64,000 bases of DNA from NCBI RefSeq assembly GCF_902459465.1, contig NC_047068.1, positions 4,774,001 through 4,838,000 on the forward strand, in the 5' to 3' direction. A model generated the notes under the pieces. That model worked only from the letters and a program-made list of their open reading frames with translations. It had not been told where the DNA came from and searched no databases. Source of the stretch: Asterias rubens. Taxonomy: Eukaryota. Shown piece by piece: positions 42,801 to 55,200 of the stretch (its first letter is position 1; the number at the start of each line of letters is the position of its first letter). The translations under genes were made by a program, and so were the position numbers.

Positions 42801-43456
42801 GAATTTGGTTGATTTCATGAAATAAACGGTAGATTATAAAGGAGACATTTTTTTATTGGAAGATTTAATTTCAAAAATTCAAGTTAAAAACATAATAAAT
42901 GCACAGAATTTAAAATTTGAATGCTTTTCTCCATTAGTTTCTGTTAAATCTCCTTTTTGACAATCTTGATTAGTAATTACTTCACTACTAAGGAATACTT
43001 CACTCGTATCTCTATGTACAAAACAACAATAATGAAAATACAGTAATTATAATCTTTATTATATATACATTTCCTTAAAAATTAATACTTCAAACATCTT
43101 AAATGTATCCAGCATTCAATCCATCTCATAACCTTTACAATTCTATCAAATAACAAAAAGAAAACTGTCCAATATGATTATTGCATCAATTTTATTACAC
43201 TTTTGATGCCGTCATCTACCAAAACAAAATTGTAGAAAGTTAAATAAATAAATAAGGACAAAAATAATGAAATGAATAAAAATGAAACACAAACGCACAC
43301 CCTCCTGCAGCATTGTTACCTTATCAATCCCCCAAATAACATTGACGGTCCACAACTCCTAAAAATTTGCATCACTGTTGCTTGAATAAGTAACAGCTAT
43401 CCTCTTTCTTTTGTTCTTGTTCTTTCTCCCCCCCCCCCCCCCCTCTCCACTCTCTC

Positions 43457-45280
43457 TTAAATGCTTAGGGAAATACTCTGAATGTCGTTAGCAGGAATTT
43501 TAGAATCTTGCTGGTCCCCTGCTCCACGGAATGTAATCTCTGCATTGTATGGGATGGTCACCGACCCACAACTGGTCCCCCACAGCCAGCTGCCACCTGA
43601 ACGCTTGTGCATTGTCACAACAACCTAAAATGAAAGAAACAGATATTTAATTTAAAATGTTTTACAATAAATTTTGTTTTAACTGATAAGGTAGCTGAAT
43701 GTCAGTATGTACATATAGTCCTTATTGTGATTGGATAGGATAGCTGAAGAAACAATACCCATAATCCATCTTAGGAATTCCTTTCATAACAACACATATT
43801 GTGATCAGGTGAGGTTTGTAATGACACCATGTGTAAATCTTTATTGAGTATCGGTTGTGGTTCTTCTTAGAAACCACTACTCAAAAGAGAATTACTCACG
43901 GCATCATCACAAAAGTCACCTGATTGTACTCCCACCATGCAATGTTTCAAATCCTACACACTGTGAGAAAATATTTTGATATAAACTAGAAATCGTGTAG
44001 TACCTGAGGCGAATAGCCAAGCACAGCCCAGAAGGATGAAATAGATGCATTTCTTTGGTGACAGAACTCCAGCATTCCTGTTTCCTCACGGTTTGGAGTA
44101 AAATGAGCACATCCCTTGAAATCACCTGTGTAAAGATATTGTTAACAAATACACTAAACTAAGCTTTTAAATGAAATTACAGTCACCATAGTCACTCAAA
44201 TTGTAAAACAGCACAGTACAATGTGAGCACCAGTGATTTAATTCTAAACTTACCAAAGATCTGTTTATCTCCATTTAAGCAAACAACATCCCAAGTTCCA
44301 ATGATATTCAATGCTTGCCTTGCTGCATCCATTGCACTAAACGATAGCTGACCTTTACATAGTGTGAAAAAAACAAAAAAATGGTTTCAATGCCTTTAAA
44401 TTATTGAGTATCTTAAAATTGCACTAATTCACTAAAATGTAAGCTGGATCTTACCTGTAAGAAATGAAGGAACAATGGCACTTGCCATACTCCAACCTAG
44501 ACTCTTCTCAAAGGATTCTAGGAAAGCCTCATAGCGTAACGAAGACACAACCTCAAGCTTAGATGCCAGAACATCTTGAAGTTCAACCTTCTTGTTCATT
44601 AACACGATGCGAGGATGAAAGAATTTCTCAGCAAGGCAGACATCGTTTCTTAGCAAATGATTCCGCAGCAGCTGTGTCTTCAGTTTGAGGTTTGCAATGA
44701 GGTCATCATGTTTCTCATCATAGGACACACTGGTGTCTTTGCCAGAGTAGGAACATTTGTGTTGAATCCAAGATTTGCCATCAGATCCAAGGGTGACCTT
44801 ACCTGACCAGTTCTTCACTTCAATGGTGAATAACCCATTATCTGGAACAGAAGGAATTTTTTTTTAAATAAGTTCTTCATTTAAAAAAATATTTACAGTA
44901 CATTTTTATCACACTCTCTATTGAAATCAACTCTAAAGGATTTCCTACTTGTCAGAGCCTTTTTTAGATCAAAATCCAAACAGCTTTATGGCAGTTCAGA
45001 AAAATCTAGTATGGATACTTTTAAAATTCTCCCAAAGATTCATTGAAAACCTACCAGTTATTACAACAAGATCAATCTCAAATTTCCTAGTCTGGAAGCC
45101 ATCTGGTACTCTAAGACCTCTGAAGATATGAGCATGAGGAACACCATGATGTCGGAGAGCTTTGGTTAAATCTTCCTCTGCTGAGCGGCCTGCTTTGATG
45201 TGTCCTTCCTCTTGATGTTTAATGGGAGCGCTTGCTTGTTGAGCTTGAACCAAACGACTTGTAACGCTGAAAACTGACAT
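43457..45280 (-). CDS. Uncharacterised NERD-domain (nuclease-related domain) protein, 5 coding exons, 333 aa
   Basis: complement(join(43457-43624,44004-44125,44254-44352,44455-44841,45055-45280)), 1002 nt, GT-AG, frame intact. NERD signature GRSAE...RVPD...EIDLVVIT..GLFTIEVKNWSG. Confidence 0.85.
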
Positions 45281-47651
45281 GGTGGCTCATCTGGCAACAG
45301 ACAATTAAGCAGTTGGGTAAACAAATACAAATACAAATGTCAAATGCAAAATTAAATAAAAACAATTATGAAAGTGTACATATTTAAATTGAGGGTTTTT
45401 AAGAAACCCAACAAAACCTGTATCAGTATGTTTACAACAAACTTTGCATTAATAATATAAAGAAAATGTGCGTCAGTTGGTGATCAGTATTATTTAGCTA
45501 ACTAAATATTGATTTGAACAAAAATGGAAATAATATTCTATAAAATAGTATAAATTGACATTTTAAACAATATTGACTAGGAAGTATTTAGTACTACCTA
45601 GTAGTGTACTGTAGTGTATTTGTGAAGGTTTTACGATGAGAACCAAGAACCGCTCAGCCTCGTCGTCAGGTCGTATTCTGACTTATGTCAAAGCCTGTTC
45701 AGTGTTCAGCACTTTTGAATTTGATCATGCCAAAAATAAGAAATAACCCTCCACCAGTTGAGTTAGGATCTCAATTTTGAAAGGTGACATTTATTTTTGT
45801 ATCAAAAAATTACTTACCAGACAGATAACTTGAAGCTCCAAATTGGTAAATTGGTTGGTCGACCTTCAAACTATTTCCAGCGTGTGCATCTCCAGTGTGG
45901 TGAACATAAACAATAACAATAAGTTATTGAATAACATCAGTTCAGCGATCGACGACTCATCGTGGATTTCACAGGTTTTTCCACGGCTAAGTGTTTCCTA
46001 AATCGACTTCATTCACATTTGTTATCACAAACAGCCTGAACATTCCTATTTGTTCAAATTGGCAGCTCTTTACGAGGTTTATTCAACTCAATTTCAGAAA
46101 AATATTAATATGACGAACAAAGAATTGACCAGCAGCTGACGATGTAAACATTAAAATGACGTCATGTAAAATAGTAAATATATAACTTTAAATATTGCTA
46201 TTTAAATTTAGCAAATTTAACTTTACTTTTTGTTCACAAAAAACAACATATAAAAACACATTGTAATATTTTAATACTTTAAGATATTTTTTAATATCAT
46301 TTATTGTCAAATTTGTCATTATTGATTTCTTATAAACTAACTTGGTGAAAATGGCTACATTCAGTGTGTGGCGCTAAACAATCCTTTCCCGCAATATATC
46401 CGAATTGCTAAATGAACCACACACACGGTATGTCGTAGACTTGTGGACAAGTCGTTAAATCGGCCCCACGTGCTGAGATAGTGCTCCCCCGACAACACTG
46501 CTCTCGCGCGAACTCACTGCTCTCGCGCGAACTGATGGCTCCCCGATTTTGACTCCTCATTAACGACTTGTACAAGTTGTCAGCGGTACGTATTCATGTA
46601 TTCAAGTACGAACGCGGTATACCTTCACTGTTGCCGCGGAGACAATCGTGCAGACGAGTCCATTTTTATAAGAGGGTAGTAATAGTTTCTAATACTGTAA
46701 AGCTTGAACCGGAGGGCATCTGTGAATCTTTTTTATTTTGATTTAACTGCTTTATTAGTTGATTAGGGCCTAACTTTACAAAGTCATCTTCAAATGCATT
46801 ACTATTTATCTGTTTAATATCCGTGAGCTGCCTCATGCAAATAAATAATGCCCACGGTCAATGGTAATGGTCCAATGCAATCCTTTAACCCGATGTGTTC
46901 TGCTCGGACTGTGTACACTGGACAAGTTGCAACATAAAATATAGTTTGTATTAATACTACCAGTCCCAAAATTCATTATTTGTTTACTGACAAATGTTTT
47001 TTTATTTTAAGTCTTCATCTAAAAAGTGATTTTGAAAACCATGGTCGACATGTGGAAGTTTGATATGTGAGTCTTGTGGACAAGTTTCACAGGGGAGTCG
47101 TGTGCGCATCGCAGGGATTCCGGAAAATTTCAGTAACTCTTTTCAGATGTCGATGTATTTTAAAGGTATTATAGCTAATCATCGACATACACTCTACTTG
47201 CCCAAGATATTGCAAGACAAGGTTTCATATAGCAGCTGTACTTTTGTTTTGTTTTAAGCAACTGTAACCACGAAAAATACTTCTCACTTCCAAGCAATCA
47301 TAACAATTAATATAAGGCTCAAATAGGGTAAAGACACCGTGAAATGCAAAAAAGGAACAGTGACTCCAATTGTAGTTTGCCTCAAACAAAAAACAAGAAA
47401 CAAATTTATTGATAAATCGATCAACAAATGCAAACCAGTGGTTGAAATAAATAAATTAAATTGAGCAATAAACAATGAAAATACCTTCAGACTAATGGAT
47501 ATTGATGGTAGAAACTGTAAATAAAGAAAATGTGGAGTGTTTCCCTTGCACTTCCAGGTTGCTATATAAACATAGTGAGTAGTTGACTTTTGCAAAACCT
47601 GTTCATTACAAAACACTTTAAACAATTTACAAACTAGGCGAGTGCTAGAAG

Positions 47652-47963
47652 GGTTACAGCTCGATGGCCGAAGGTTCAATAGTCTGAATGTTCGATAGTC
47701 CAAATTGACAATAAGGTCCGATAGTCCGAATTGACAATAAGGTCCGATAGTCCGAATTGACAATAAGGTTTGATCGTCGATTCGGACTATCGGACCTTAT
47801 TTGGACCAGTGAACCTTCAGATCAATGAACCTTCGGACTATCGTATCAAATGTACGGGTTAATGAAACCTACTTCATTTTGGGACTAATGAACCCCCTGT
47901 TATGGGAAATTTGTGCGTTCGGACAATCAAACCTTCGGACTAACGGACCTTCGGGTGGACACC
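47652..47963. mobile_element. Nested MITE with an 8-bp TSD and GGT...ACC ends (Merlin-like)
   Basis: TSD GCTAGAAG at 47644-47651 and 47964-47971. Internal subrepeats GATAGTCCGAA / TTCGGACTA. Confidence 0.65.
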
Positions 47964-48217
47964 GCTAGAAGACCGTACAGAAATGTAAACGGTGGTGGAT
48001 ATGTGAAAACTAACTTGAATGAACATTTTAAATGGGTCTTCTACCTATGTTGCACAACCGCCTAGCCTTTATACATTATCAAACCCTCTCAGTCTGTGCT
48101 TTGGATATTTAAGTATTTGGATTGGAAAGAATAAATTTTAACTAAAATGAGCAAAATAATTGTTGGTAATTGCACAGTATAAATGTCATTCTTACATTTG
48201 GAACCATTCAGAATGCA

Positions 48218-48285
48218 CCATCCACATCAGTCAAGAACTTTGGTGCATATTTTGATTGAATTGTCTATGACTGATCAAATAGACC
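48218..48285 (+). mobile_element. Small decayed L2/CR1 RT C-terminal fragment
   Basis: PSTSVKNFGAYFD* then frameshifted LSMTDQI, resembling the VRNLG..FD..LSM motif. Confidence 0.4.
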
Positions 48286-51200
48286 TGCTTTCGTTTACAC
48301 CAAACTCTTTCCAACTTGTGTTAATCTTACGACTTGAGTTGAGTCTCAGCCTTGCAACGTAACATGCAAACCCTAAGATTAACGTTTCGTGAAAACGGCT
48401 CCAGCTTTGCAAGTCTGTTCGATTTCATGTGTCACAGATTAGGAAGTATGTATCTGACGATTCATAACATCATGTGATTCGCAGCCATGTTCTTTCTCGG
48501 TTAGATTGTTGTAATGGGCTGCTTACAGAAAACCCACATGCATATTTTAAAAGAGACTTCACAGTTTGCAGAACTGGGCTGCTCGTGTTATATTTAGGTT
48601 AAATCGCCGTCGTGATGCCATGCTCCTTCTAAGATCGCTTCATTGGTTACCAATTAAACAGAGGATTGCAATTAAGATTATTTTATTTGTATGAACATTT
48701 CTTTTTAAATCAGGCACCAGAGTAATTTAATGAGTGTCTAGAGTTGTATCAGTTTTTGCGTACACATCTTCACTCCAATGCAGATCCATCTCGGCTAACT
48801 TTTCCCATGACTCGCAGTAAGGCAGGAGATCAAACTTTCACAGTTTTTACAGCAGCTTAGGGGTAGGGGTGGAACGAACTTCCTTCTTAAACGAGGAGTG
48901 TTTCCCTTGCACTGTCAGGCTGCCATGTGACCCTGTGGAGAAAAGAAAGAAACACACAATGTTGACCTGAACTTATGTTGATTGTGTAATACTATCTGTA
49001 GTATGATAGGCTAATACTTATTGCAAGCAAATAAGTTAACGTAAATGTCAGAAAATTGTGTTGTTAAAATCACACATGAAGATACCATTTTTCACGTCAG
49101 GTACCTCTCTGTGCAGACGTCTTACGTGAGCATGAATTAAGCCCAAAGTGGTGACGTCACCTAACAACACAATGTTTTGACCTTCACGTTCACGTGTTTG
49201 CTGGCATAACATGCAGCTCATAAAACCTACCTAATACTTACGGGCTAAAGTGAGGTTCGAGGCAACACCATCACAAATAAAGACTCTCATGTAATTTCAA
49301 ATCTTATTTAAGTTTTAGTGTTTAAATTTTTTAAACATTTTGTTATTATGTTTTATTATTGTTTCTAAAAAAAACAACAATTATGTTTAATTATAAAAAC
49401 CAACAACAAAAACAGTGAATTTGGTACTTTTTGCATTGCTTGAGACTCTACTCTCTAGATACAAAAGTTCCAACAACAATGCAAAACAAGTAACCTTGTG
49501 TAGAACTAGAACTTTAGAAGTAGGGGCTCAATTTTAATAACCTGTGTGTGTCGGTGCAACCGCCACTGGCGATAGTGCTTTTTGTGGAACCATGGAGGTA
49601 GAAACTACCTCCATGGTGGAACCAGTGAGTTATATGAATAATAACACATGTTTTGTTAAGTTTTACTTCAAAACAAAACTTGTTCTTTTAAGTAAGAAGC
49701 CCCAAACCAAGTTACCGGTAACTCCATGGAGGTAGATTTTTGCAATATTATTTTGTCAACGCAAATTTATTAGTAGTTTAATTAAGAAACTTAACAGCAA
49801 GCTCACCTGTTTTGATTTCATGATGCCAACACAGTATGCACCAACCATCACCACTGCCTTGAGCAAGGCTACTGATTTCATCGAATATTCGGCCGGTGCA
49901 AATCATTTGTTTACAAAAGTGTCATTGCCTTTCATCAATCAATACACGCTGTGTGCAGTGTGTGTGTGTTGGCATGATGCATATAAATGGCGGCTTCTTC
50001 TTCTTTTTCCTTGCGACCTGTCGTCGACGTGAGCAGCTCTCTTGCATGTTGCATGCCTTGAGAAAACTGGCTACTTGACAGCTGCTTCTATATCTTGTTC
50101 TTCAAGTTTATCAACCAAGTCAGACCAAGTTAAGACGAAGTTATTTATTTAATATGCACGTCAAAGTTCCCGATGAAAATCCGTACTCAAAAGTACAACC
50201 ATACACACACACGACGTCTAGTGTGTAGGCATAATAAATACACGCTGACAGGTTTGTTGATCGTTCATTCATACATGTGACTTCCCGAACCCATCCAATA
50301 CAGGGTGTACTGTTTGACAGCATATACATGTTGAATATTCATTGATTTAACGACATCGACCAATCAGATGCGTCCGTACGATTTCGGCTGAAGTGCCCAT
50401 AGGCTGTGCACAAACTGATGACAACTTGTACAAGTCGTTAATGAGGAGTCAAAATCGGGGAGCCATCAGTTCGCGCGAGAGCAGTGAGTTCGCGCGAGAG
50501 CAGTGAGTTCGCGCGAGAGCAGTGTTGTCGGGGGAGCACTATCTCAGCACGTGGGGCCGATTTAACGACTTGTCCACAAGTCTAGGTATGTCGTCGTACA
50601 CACATGTACCACACCGTCACACATAGCAGAATCGCTTAACTGACGACTGTGTGTTACTTTTAATTAATAAATAGCTCAATATAAACAGCACAGTCTAATA
50701 ACATTCCTTCCTCCTTGGTCTAATCTCCAGCAGTTGTTACGTCATCTCTCATCGTGTGAACTGTACCTCGCACGCAGTGATGAGAGGATTCTCCAGTCCA
50801 TGTATGAATGGTAAGGTAGTCATTTTCTTTACTTTATTTAGATTAGAACTTAACTTTTGATTGAATAAAGTTTTGGCATGAGGATTGAATGGTAAGCAAA
50901 CTCTAGGGGTCTCGTCATTGTTTGTATAGCATTTATTTAGAAGGCTTTAATTAGTCTTTAGAATTAGATATCACACCTTGTGTCGTGACACAAGTTGTGT
51001 AAAGTGTAAGGGTGTGATTTAGCATAGTTGCAAAGTACTTCTAGAAACTATAGAAGGCTCCCCTGTGTGTGAGCCGAGCATTATTATATAGTTTCTAGAT
51101 AGAAGTAGTTGCAAAGCAATAGCATGTCAATTATGATTTAAAAGGCATTGAATGAACACTTTCGGTAACTACCTCTTTTTCAGAATCTTAATCTTAGGTT

Positions 51201-52285: not shown

Positions 52286-55200
52286 ATGTCGGAGTTATCA
52301 ACCGAAACTGAAATGACCTTTGAGCGACCCAGCAGCAGATATGAAAATCTGTCCAGCCGTTTCCTTCAGAAAGGTCGCAATTTTAGGCGACAGTATGCCC
52401 ATCTTTATGCAGAGCGTTTGTGCAGTATGTATACTCGGTTGACAGAGACAGCCAACAGAAAATGGGGTAATGATAACAAATTGTTGTAATCAAAATTTAT
52501 TTATTTACTCACAAAAATTGTGTCTAGAAATAGATGTCACTGTCTGCAAAAAAGTTGCTAATATTATATAATGTTTTTTTAAAACAAGAACTCTTTCTAT
52601 GGGCAACCATTCAAATAACTCTTTTAACCAGATAACAAAAAAGAACAAATTAATGTGCACATTTTTCCCTGACTTCATGTGCCTGATTGAAATGAGATTC
52701 CAGTCAGTGAGTCTTGGTTCTAGCCATAAGGCCCTAAAAACAGCCATGTCAGCCAAAGTCATAGTCCCAAATGACAGCTGAGGTTGTAGGCCCAAATGAC
52801 AGCCATGTCAGCCGAGGTCATAGGCCTTAATGACAGCCATGTCAGCTGAGGCTATAGGCCCCTTATGAAATGCATGTCTGGCGAGGTTATAGGCCCTTAT
52901 GAGAGCCATGTTAGCTGAGGCTATAGGCCCCTTATGAGATGCATGTCAGCCGAGGTCATAGGCTCTAATGACAGACATTTCCGCCGAGGTCATAGGCCCA
53001 AATGGCAGCCATGTCAGCCGAGGTCATAGGCCCAAATGACAGCCGAGGTCATAGGCCCTAATGACAGCCATGTCAGCTGAGGTCACAGGCCCTTAGCCAT
53101 GTCAGCCGAGGTCATAGGCCCAAATGACAGCCATGTCAGCCGAGGTCATAGGCCCTAATGACAGCCATGTCAGCTGAGGTCACAGGCCCTTAGCCATGTC
53201 AGCTGAGGTCATAGGCCCTAATGACACCCATATCAGCCGAGGTCATAGGCCCTAATGACAGCCATGTCAACCGAGGTCATAGGCCCAAATGACAGCCATG
53301 TCAGCCGAGGTCATAGGCCCAAATGGCAGCCATGTCAGCTGAGGTCATAGGCCCTAATGACAGCCATGTCAGCCGAGGTCATAGGCCCAAATGACAGACA
53401 TTTCAGCCGAGGTCATAGGTCCAAATGGCAGCCGTATCAGCTGAGGTCATAGGCCAAAATTGCAGCCATGTTAGCCAAGGTTTAGCAATCAACTGTGCGT
53501 GAAAACAGTTCTCTCTATAGAGGAACAATAAATCCTGGTGCTTTAGAGAGAATCTTTGTTCTCTTGGCTTTGTCAAGTAAAGGATTCTTTACGCCAGTAC
53601 TTTTTCTTTCTAGAAAATTTTATAAATCCTTTTTTGTTTGTCCTTTTTAGGAGAGTCAGTTTTGATGCGCAAATTGTTTGAACTGAAGGCAGATGAGGAG
53701 TGTTGCGTGATTGGAACCTTATTTAAAAGTATGGAACTCAAACCCAGCATTCTGAAAGAAATCAGCGAAGATGTAAGATGATTTCATCAACCTTGCCTTC
53801 AATCCCCTCCCCTCCCCTAATAAAAAGGTCTGCTGTGTGTCCACATTGTACAAGCAGCAAACACCTGAAAATGACTTAAGGGTTGTGGACCAAGTCCAAG
53901 AACCAAAGGCGCATAATTATTAAGTAAGAACAAAAGTAACATCTCTCCCTTTCCCATATTCCACTTCCATGGTACAGTAGAAATCTGTTGTGTTGTATCT
54001 TACTTAGCAAGGGGGATAGCTAAAGGATTGGGTCTTTTCTCCTAAGAAAGAGTTTCTTCATCTTTGCAACGTTATTCTCTCTATAAGTTATTTCCATTTT
54101 TAAATCTTCTCTTGTTTTTAGCACAACATGGTTCCGCAGCCGAAAAGGGACAAGTACATAGCAGATACAGACACATTGATTCTAGAAGATGAACTCCAAA
54201 GAATTGTTCTCCTTGGAAATATTGATGTCCAAAAGGCTGTTACAGGTAGGCTACAAAGTATTACAGCCACTTAGAATTTAAAAACATTTTTGTTACAAAC
54301 TTTTGGGAAATTGTTTTGAAATTCTAGTGTTATAGTTATGTGAGAGATGACGTGGTTTTCATCATTCCATCTTGCTCCCTTTATAGGTGTAGTTATAGTT
54401 TTATATGGTCACGAGAAAGATGACATGGTTTTCATCATTCCATCTTACTCCCTTTATAGGTGTAGTTATAGTTTTATACGGTCACGAGAAAGATGACATG
54501 GTTTTCATCATTCCATCTTGCTCCCTTTATAGGTGTAGTTATAGTTTTATACGGTCACGAGAAAGATGACGTGGTTTTCATCATTCCATCTTGCTCCCTT
54601 TATAGGTGTAGTTATAGTTTTATATGGTCACGAGAAAGATGACATGGTTTTCATCATTCCATCTTGCTCCCTTTATAGGTGTAGTTATAGTTTTATATGG
54701 TCACGAGAAAGATGACATGGTTTTCATCATTCCATCTTGCTCCCTTTATAGGTGTAGTTATAGTTTTATATGGTCACGAGAGAGATGACGTGGTTTTCAT
54801 CATTCCATCTTGCTCCCTTTATAGGTGTAGTTATAGTTTTATATGGTCACGAGAAAGATGACGTGGTTTTCATCATTCCATCTTGCTCCCTTTATAGGTG
54901 TAGTTATAGTTTTATATGGTCACGAGAAAGATGACGTGGTTTTCATCATTCCATCTTGCTCCCTTTATAGGTGTAGTTATAGTTTTATACGGTCACGAGA
55001 AAGATGACATGGTTTTCATCATTCCATCTTGCTCCCTTTATAGGTGTAGTTATAGTTTTATATGGTCACGAGAAAGATGACGTGGTTTTCATCATTCCAT
55101 CTTGCTCCCTTTATAGGTGTAGTTATAGTTTTATATGGTCACGAGAAAGATGACGTGGTTTTCATCATTCCATCTTGCTCCCTTTATAGGTGTAGTTATA

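Follow-up and report, generated by a model that had tools for sequence, protein, structure and literature searches.

A 64-kb window of the genome of the starfish Asterias rubens (contig NC_047068.1; all coordinates below are positions in this window, the whole stretch of DNA analysed) carries on its minus strand, at 43457-45280, an intron-bearing gene for a protein with a NERD domain. As a whole, the locus is best explained, with reasonable likelihood, as a functional single-copy gene for a soluble two-domain protein of 333 residues, in which a nuclease domain of the PD-(D/E)xK type is predicted to be followed by a family-specific, β-rich C-terminal domain. Its most likely function, which we regard as probable, is that of a metal-dependent endonuclease made in proliferating cells. 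RefSeq and UniProt already list the gene as a 'NERD domain-containing protein' that is uncharacterised. Four observations on it appear to be new: the conserved pairing with POLD2, the gene for a subunit of DNA polymerase delta, a C-terminal domain not described before, a family history of vertical descent and two independent losses of the active site. These observations extend a known kind of protein and do not define a new one.

Gene structure

The coding sequence is distributed over five exons, separated by four introns that all have GT..AG ends:

45280-45278, minus strand: start codon, with gccacc directly before it
45055-45280, minus strand: coding exon 1, residues 1-75; conserved N-terminal helix, α1 with E35, strand β2 with D70
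44455-44841, minus strand: coding exon 2, residues 76-204; E83-x-K85, remaining NERD domain, linker
44254-44352, minus strand: coding exon 3, residues 205-237; beginning of the C-terminal domain, invariant T224-W225-D226
44004-44125, minus strand: coding exon 4, residues 238-278; G238-D239, R250, H260-x-R262
43457-43624, minus strand: coding exon 5, residues 279-333 and TAA stop codon; R286, F310, C-terminal ...SLSI

The spliced coding sequence of 1002 nt translates into 333 residues and a stop codon, and E35, D70, E83 and K85, which a preliminary description of this DNA had read as a nuclease-type active site, all stand at these positions. The translation is identical letter for letter to RefSeq XP_033631195.1 ('uncharacterized protein LOC117293089', Asterias rubens; P0063 in our sequence set), so the gene model is the annotated one. 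Comparison with the Patiria orthologue gives a nonsynonymous distance (dN) of 0.12 with saturated synonymous distance (dS), and the gene appears to be under strong purifying selection. Complete open reading frames of several orthologues are carried by Logan contigs of 1.4-2.6 kb; as this length is insufficient for the introns, these contigs probably represent transcripts. Just past the stop codon, at 43430-43456, about 16 consecutive C residues and then a CT-rich stretch are found on the plus strand; at the start of the 3′ untranslated region (UTR) of the minus-strand gene, this reads as a G-run.

The NERD domain and its fold

NERD was reportedly first noted by Grynberg and Godzik in 2004, on the plasmid pXO1 of Bacillus anthracis. 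The Pfam NERD model (PF08378, a member of the PD-(D/E)xK superfamily) matches the whole starfish protein with 66.6 bits (cut-off 22.1; E-value 3.4e-18) over residues 31-156, which cover positions 2-110 of the 111 in the profile. Each of the first two exons is also matched by itself, exon 1 with 22.7 bits at positions 2-45 and exon 2 with 30.7 bits at positions 47-110, the two exons covering complementary halves of the profile. An AlphaFold2 model of the whole protein was built from a family alignment of 51 sequences, with a predicted local distance difference test score (pLDDT) of 87.7 and a predicted template modelling score (pTM) of 0.82. Its elements are a helix at residues 26-44 (E35), strands at 52-59, 66-75 (D70) and 78-85 (E83, K85), a helix at 123-140 and a strand at 150-156. 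This predicted order, α-β-β-β-α-β, is that of the PD-(D/E)xK core, with D70 on β2 and E83-x-K85 on β3, and residues ~24-190 form in the model a NERD-type PD-(D/E)xK nuclease domain consisting of α1 (E35), β1, β2 (D70), β3 (E83-x-K85), α2 and β4.

A search of solved structures with residues 24-190, using VIA-align, a fold search independent of Foldseek, returned nearly exclusively PD-(D/E)xK nucleases among its top 50 matches, the best being Can2 (Z 8.9), VC1899 (Z 8.5) and McrC (Z 8.1); Cdn1, AF1548, Card1, Hjc, SduA and many restriction enzymes were matched as well. The Foldseek result for the NERD part agrees with this, at lower significance, while a profile search of PDB sequences found no solved relative by sequence. 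The assignment to NERD and to the PD-(D/E)xK fold, made from the letters in the preliminary description, is thus corroborated by the Pfam match, by the order of elements in the AlphaFold model and by both fold searches, which recover the core and match it to nucleases. With residues 26-209, the best solved matches are Can2, Card1 and VC1899 (PDB 7bdv, 6wxw and 1xmx; Z 8.9, 7.1 and 8.5), metal-dependent PD-(D/E)xK nucleases that cut DNA and/or RNA. Their identity with the starfish protein is 13-16%, and their CARF sensor and activation by cyclic oligoadenylate are not found in it.

The starfish protein thus resembles the members of PF08378 in its full-length hidden Markov model (HMM) match, its E...D...ExK motif and its predicted core, and it differs in being eukaryotic, intron-bearing, vertically inherited and fused to a C-terminal domain of ~130 residues for which there is no Pfam or NCBIfam model. 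In libraries of defence proteins, the generic NERD module of MkoA, PglW and MAD6 alone was matched (28-36 bits, against full-length cut-offs of 460-990). In these proteins NERD is fused to kinase, helicase or ATPase effectors encoded in defence loci, whereas the starfish protein shows the NERD module only, and no kinase, helicase or CARF domain was found in it. The plant GW protein of RNA-directed DNA methylation that is also called 'NERD' (mentioned in PMC13673822) belongs to another family and shares nothing but the name.

The C-terminal domain

No Pfam or NCBIfam model matches residues 205-333. Modelled alone, this region shows one helix followed by eight strands (pLDDT 83), and it is predicted with high confidence to pack on the nuclease domain. 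Residues ~205-333 are described here as a predicted family-specific β-rich domain around a small Sm/SH3-like barrel. Its invariant polar residues are T224-W225-D226, G238-D239, R250, H260-x-R262 and R286. The residues that are strictly invariant throughout the family, R57, W87, G89, W100, T224, W225, D226 and G238, include none of the catalytic ones.

The barrel description has a point against it, as VIA-align of the C-terminal domain against the PDB gave nothing at Z ≥5 (best Z 4.8). Weak matches to barrels of the Hfq, Sm, SH3 and WYL types recur at Z 4.4-4.6, over ~50 residues and with a root-mean-square deviation (rmsd) of 2-3 Å, and the NAD-kinase and Sm matches given by Foldseek against the PDB are all non-significant. 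The likeness to a barrel is taken as a lead only, and we assign the predicted domain to no known fold family beyond 'small β-barrel-like'.

When the C-terminal domain was searched against the clusters of AlphaFold DB, most of the nine best matches (E-values up to 1e-3) turned out to be C-terminal halves of proteins already matched over both domains in the search with the whole model; they include A0A2R6X0W0, I1LFX9, A0A4D9ABC9, W6LG77, Q38A54 and bacterial entries named 'NERD domain-containing protein'. Q38A54 (413 residues) is matched over starfish residues 4-332 with a template modelling (TM) score of 0.70, and by the C-terminal domain alone at an E-value of 7e-4. Judging by its accession range and its size, Q38A54 is probably TbLrRP2 of Trypanosoma brucei (Tb927.10.9200), an identity that could not be confirmed from the literature; only if it is correct are both domains shared with TbLrRP2. 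A mostly bacterial ESM-Atlas cluster of 326-residue proteins, in which Planctomycetota are commonest, is matched by the whole model with a TM score of 0.78 over 292 residues (rmsd 2.9 Å), and a homologue of 296 residues on a dense, prokaryote-style contig (P0119) matches the HMM of the C-terminal domain at an E-value of 1.8e-9. As full-length bacterial relatives of both domains exist, the two-domain architecture is old and not confined to eukaryotes. A scan of bacterial genomes with the family alignment yielded 49 loci, all matched in the generic NERD region only, and the HMM search found the C-terminal domain in none of the 49. The gene of the 296-residue prokaryotic two-domain homologue (L060/L061:10001-10891) lies 4 nt downstream of a gene for a HAD-family hydrolase; its neighbours are housekeeping genes (glutamine synthetase, OMP decarboxylase), with no obvious defence island.

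Distribution and vertical inheritance

An exhaustive HMMER search with exon 2 gave only 25 cluster representatives at an E-value ≤1e-3; further members were named by word-indexed searches and cluster look-ups. Animal orthologues, of ~330 residues, were found in anthozoans, echinoderms, hemichordates, amphioxus, tunicates and fishes. Among the asteroids, identity to the starfish protein is 99% in A. amurensis, 80% in Patiria and 79% in Acanthaster; the other echinoderm sequences come from one ophiuroid, one holothurian, echinoids and crinoids. Two hemichordates, Branchiostoma and the tunicates Clavelina and Oikopleura complete the invertebrate deuterostomes, the fishes are represented by rays, arowana, sturgeon and paddlefish (named after the zebrafish gene si:zfos-911d5.4), and the anthozoans by octocorals and one sea anemone. 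Outside the animals, relatives occur in three choanoflagellates, Coleochaete, mosses, liverworts, lycophytes and seed plants. The choanoflagellate, streptophyte and bacterial members are more distant relatives of the starfish protein. The fish protein si:zfos-911d5.4, A9RW93 of the moss Physcomitrium and the seed-plant 'NERD domain-containing proteins' have the same two-domain architecture, a length of ~320-380 residues and the same C-terminal motifs. No tetrapod member is among the search matches obtained, an absence within the reach of the search and not a proof of loss. The sole protostome row is one weak, fragmentary insect match that we take as spurious, and the absence of protostomes again refers to the reach of the search.

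A maximum-likelihood tree of the family agrees with the species tree, with streptophytes, then choanoflagellates and then cnidarians as successive branches, followed by the deuterostomes with amphioxus, Olfactores and Ambulacraria, the latter dividing into crinoids, hemichordates, Asterozoa and Echinozoa. The four clean coding introns, taken in the preliminary description as the sign of a settled host gene, support the same history, since introns of the same positions and phases are present in echinoderms, hemichordate and amphioxus. By exact exon reconstruction, two phase 1 introns, after codons 74/75 and 203-205, are common to starfish, sea urchin, Saccoglossus and amphioxus, the one at 236/237 to echinoderms and the hemichordate, and the one at 278/279 to echinoderms and amphioxus. 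The genes of ambulacrarians, amphioxus and sturgeon are interrupted by 3-5 coding introns. Single-exon orthologues were found in an octocoral (L005:10001-10993), in Clavelina (L007:10001-10993) and in a sea-anemone-like sequence (L057:10001-10996), and reflect either wholesale intron loss or replacement by retrocopies. The sturgeon orthologue (L006:10001-51335) extends over 41 kb, ~36 kb of which separate the last exon from the others; shortened paralogous gene models (P0008, P0009 and P0012) are also present in sturgeon, possibly from its genome duplication.

A gene tree that mirrors the species tree, together with intron positions shared across phyla, argues for vertical inheritance and not for recent transfer. 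NERD is mainly prokaryotic (PMC3424549, PMC12702573) and full-length bacterial relatives exist, which could have pointed to a bacterial contaminant or to a recent horizontal acquisition. The four spliceosomal introns, whose positions recur in hemichordate and amphioxus, the animal flanking genes in conserved synteny and the congruent phylogeny exclude both, and we regard this explanation as refuted; the survey of taxa proposed in the preliminary description shows no sign of recent horizontal transfer. Rooting the eukaryotic tree with sequences from prokaryotic contexts gave long-branch artefacts and did not discriminate between a single origin and several.

Divergence of the active site and of the N-terminus

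All 34 alignment rows from invertebrate animals, identified by name or by their place in the tree, have an invariant tetrad E35/D70/E83/K85, as do the rows for choanoflagellates, charophytes and mosses; it is likewise retained by the liverwort and lycophyte orthologues. The conservation of the catalytic residues in orthologues, on which the preliminary description made its reading depend, is thus seen in invertebrates, choanoflagellates and bryophytes. It does not extend to two groups. In fishes, the four positions are occupied by F/N/D/R in rays and by F/D/D/K in sturgeon, and D70 is replaced by S in arowana (P0011, P0020, P0059 and P0060). In the seed plants compared (Pyrus, Camellia, Stephania, Bertholletia and Diospyros; P0103-P0112), E35, E68 and E83 are replaced, often together with K85, as in ...VSVKNVSG and ...ISVQNLSG. 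The catalytic residues were lost independently in these two groups, both of which lie on long branches (0.69 for vertebrates, 1.22 for seed plants). The preliminary description had also mentioned a likeness of the C-terminal half to uncharacterised plant NERD proteins, in which the E of ExK would be lost. The C-terminal half is indeed shared with them, and the loss is real in seed plants; mosses, liverworts and lycophytes retain this residue.

The C-terminal motifs TWD, G(D/E)F and R250 persist in both seed plants and fishes, most of which also keep R286, and fishes also H260. That they are retained where the active site is degenerate speaks for a separate function of the C-terminal domain. 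A further difference concerns the N-terminus, where streptophyte members have a hydrophobic, transmembrane-like segment, measured in moss and Coleochaete, which animal members lack and which has a counterpart in TbLrRP2 according to its paper (PMC12702573); over 19 residues, the maximal Kyte-Doolittle hydropathy reaches 1.87 in the moss and Coleochaete segments and 1.14 in the starfish protein.

Pairing with POLD2 and the intergenic region

The following features lie upstream of the NERD gene, on the side of its divergent neighbour:

45291-45310, minus strand: stretch rich in pyrimidines with AG at its end, 10 nt before the NERD ATG; putative acceptor of a 5′UTR intron
46385-46392: strict match to the E2F consensus (TTTCCCGC); ~1.1 kb from the NERD ATG on its upstream side, ~40 bp outside the following element
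46436-50584: terminal inverted repeat (TIR) element between the NERD and POLD2 genes; 106-nt arms at 46436-46541 and 50479-50584, 97% complementary
52286-52468 (end approximate), plus strand: first coding exon of POLD2, the divergent neighbour of the NERD gene

The head-to-head position relative to POLD2 had been noticed beforehand, with the reservation that adjacency alone is weak evidence. The arrangement was confirmed and carries more weight than supposed there, as comparison of loci reveals the same divergent pair in Patiria, Lytechinus, Anneissia, Saccoglossus and Branchiostoma, that is, with Asterias, in six species of Echinodermata, Hemichordata and Cephalochordata. The pair therefore dates back at least to the deuterostome ancestor. 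The distance from start to start is 2.3 kb in Patiria, 3.1 kb in Lytechinus, 2.8 kb in Saccoglossus, 1.9 kb in Branchiostoma and 2.8 kb in Anneissia; in Asterias, 7.0 kb separate the NERD ATG from the POLD2 start, of which 4.15 kb are the TIR element. We found no paper linking POLD2 to a NERD gene pairing.

The site at 46385-46392 is the only strict E2F consensus (TTTSSCGC) of the Asterias intergenic region; it lies on the NERD side of the TIR insertion, with none on the POLD2 side, and is a candidate for the core of an ancestral bidirectional promoter. Strict sites have a density of 0.03-0.09 per kb in the loci compared, and the whole window holds 2 where 2.8 are expected. Seven of ten animal loci have such a site 0.88-1.36 kb upstream of the NERD ATG, including two without a POLD2 neighbour, those of an octocoral and a tunicate. 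Nine of the 16 E2F sites fall within the 2-kb upstream intervals (binomial p 1.6e-7 against the locus-wide density), and in 2000 shuffles at most four of the ten loci scored. Saccoglossus and Branchiostoma have in their NERD-POLD2 intergenic regions an identical 15-mer around the E2F site, TTTCCCGCCATCTTG (L003:9119-9133 and L004:8227-8241), which looks like an E2F-YY1 composite of the E2F consensus and a YY1-type GCCATCTTG motif. In all intron-bearing orthologues, a pyrimidine tract with AG is found a few to ~50 nt upstream of the ATG. At the level of motifs, this suggests a 5′UTR intron, with the first exon near the POLD2 side. Taken together, we infer from these sequences that NERD and POLD2 may be co-regulated from a shared promoter of the E2F type.

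Proposed function

We propose that D70, E83 and E35 would bind a divalent metal and that K85 would complete a phosphodiesterase site cutting nucleic acid, while the C-terminal domain would hold, position or select the substrate. Transcription would probably start from an E2F-type promoter ancestrally shared head to head with POLD2, and the protein would be made alongside the replication machinery in proliferating cells. As substrate, DNA seems slightly better than an even choice because of the POLD2 and E2F context, and RNA comes second, at about one chance in three, because TbLrRP2 is the only functional precedent among eukaryotic NERD proteins.

Several observations weigh against this proposal. 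POLD2 is not a neighbour in the octocoral Dendronephthya, the tunicate Clavelina or, within the 10 kb examined, sturgeon, all of which have kept the NERD gene, and the pairing is not present at the moss locus either; a transposon of 4.15 kb now parts the two genes in A. rubens and is tolerated there; the Asterias and Patiria intergenic regions have no detectable non-coding sequence similarity; the crinoid locus is without a strict E2F site; and for five of the seven loci the E2F site may be one that serves POLD2 only. Adjacency might then be microsynteny passively retained in slowly rearranging genomes, without shared regulation or function, which we hold to be a serious alternative of somewhat lower probability. 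The conservation of orientation and of the 1.9-3.1 kb spacing in three phyla, the presence of E2F sites at a similar upstream distance even where POLD2 is not the neighbour, and a likely 5′UTR intron that would put the first exon near the POLD2 side all speak for more than passive retention. Likewise, the loss of the tetrad in seed plants, rays, sturgeon and arowana, while C-terminal invariants persist, indicates that the core function may not need catalysis. Seed plants and fishes have replaced E35, D70, E83 or K85, and the residues invariant throughout the family are not the catalytic ones, as would be expected of a binder or scaffold for nucleic acid, a nucleotide or a partner protein, in which the tetrad would be ancestral baggage or serve an auxiliary activity. 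This is rather unlikely for the starfish protein, since the tetrad has remained invariant in cnidarians, ambulacrarians, amphioxus, most tunicate-like sequences, choanoflagellates, bryophytes and lycophytes, over more than a billion years, and the long branches of the lineages that lost it suggest a functional change there and not the ancestral state.

Two further explanations retain the nuclease and change its target. TbLrRP2, the one eukaryotic NERD protein that has been studied by experiment, needs conserved charged residues of its NERD domain for the processing and fragmentation of large-subunit (LSU) rRNA (PMC12702573), and the starfish protein could similarly be an RNA-processing endonuclease that cuts rRNA precursors or other RNAs instead of DNA, its link to POLD2 being positional only. 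The weak matches of the C-terminal domain to Hfq, Sm and LSm barrels and the S1 RNA-binding domain present in one archaeal NERD cluster would fit. TbLrRP2 itself has an N-terminal membrane anchor (endoplasmic reticulum or nuclear envelope), a trypanosome-specific DEDDh partner and a lineage-specific substrate (PMC12702573), and its fragmentation pattern is missing from animals; the starfish protein is soluble, with no transmembrane segment, and the Sm-like matches are below a meaningful level. Q38A54 does match both domains, and its origin from T. brucei and identity with Tb927.10.9200 are, as said, unconfirmed. An RNA-processing role of this kind is possible, at a probability well short of even. 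An innate-immune nuclease descended from prokaryotic NERD-containing defence proteins is improbable. Its NERD part matches the N-terminal NERD modules of MkoA, PglW and MAD6, and structurally the CRISPR ancillary nucleases Can2, Card1 and Cdn1 are nearest; the match is to the generic module only, without a kinase, helicase or CARF domain, and a single-copy gene under apparently strong purifying selection, with an orthologue tree mirroring the species tree and no lineage-specific expansions, is not what such a role would predict. The one full-length bacterial relative of known context also sits among housekeeping genes and not in a defence island.

Returning to the proposed endonuclease, a broader and tentative scenario, doubtful as a whole, can be outlined. 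The starfish protein may descend from an ancient eukaryotic nuclease composed of NERD and a C-terminal barrel, possibly present in the last eukaryotic common ancestor and homologous to TbLrRP2. In animals it would have become a soluble S-phase enzyme, transcribed from an E2F promoter shared with POLD2 for more than 500 million years and acting in replication, repair or replication-coupled removal of RNA, which would later have been lost in tetrapods and protostomes and would have lost its catalytic residues in fishes and seed plants.

Significance

No paper was found on any animal or plant member of the family, nor on si:zfos-911d5.4, LOC117293089 or A9RW93. As the gene is missing, within the reach of the searches, from tetrapods and protostomes, it has escaped study in the standard models. 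The literature treats NERD as an essentially bacterial domain that occurs in plants and archaea in isolated cases, a view also expressed in the TbLrRP2 paper of December 2025 (PMC12702573). A well-conserved NERD family with two domains, which animals from anthozoans to fishes have inherited vertically, contrasts with this view. It may also provide the likely evolutionary context of TbLrRP2, so far thought to be a bacterial acquisition, if Q38A54 is indeed that protein. The differences within the family, where fish and seed-plant orthologues have lost parts of the catalytic tetrad, amount to a natural experiment that may separate catalytic from non-catalytic roles. With the starfish gene and its orthologues there is a definite candidate for a proliferation-linked, uncharacterised nuclease in organisms that include model echinoderms and amphioxus.

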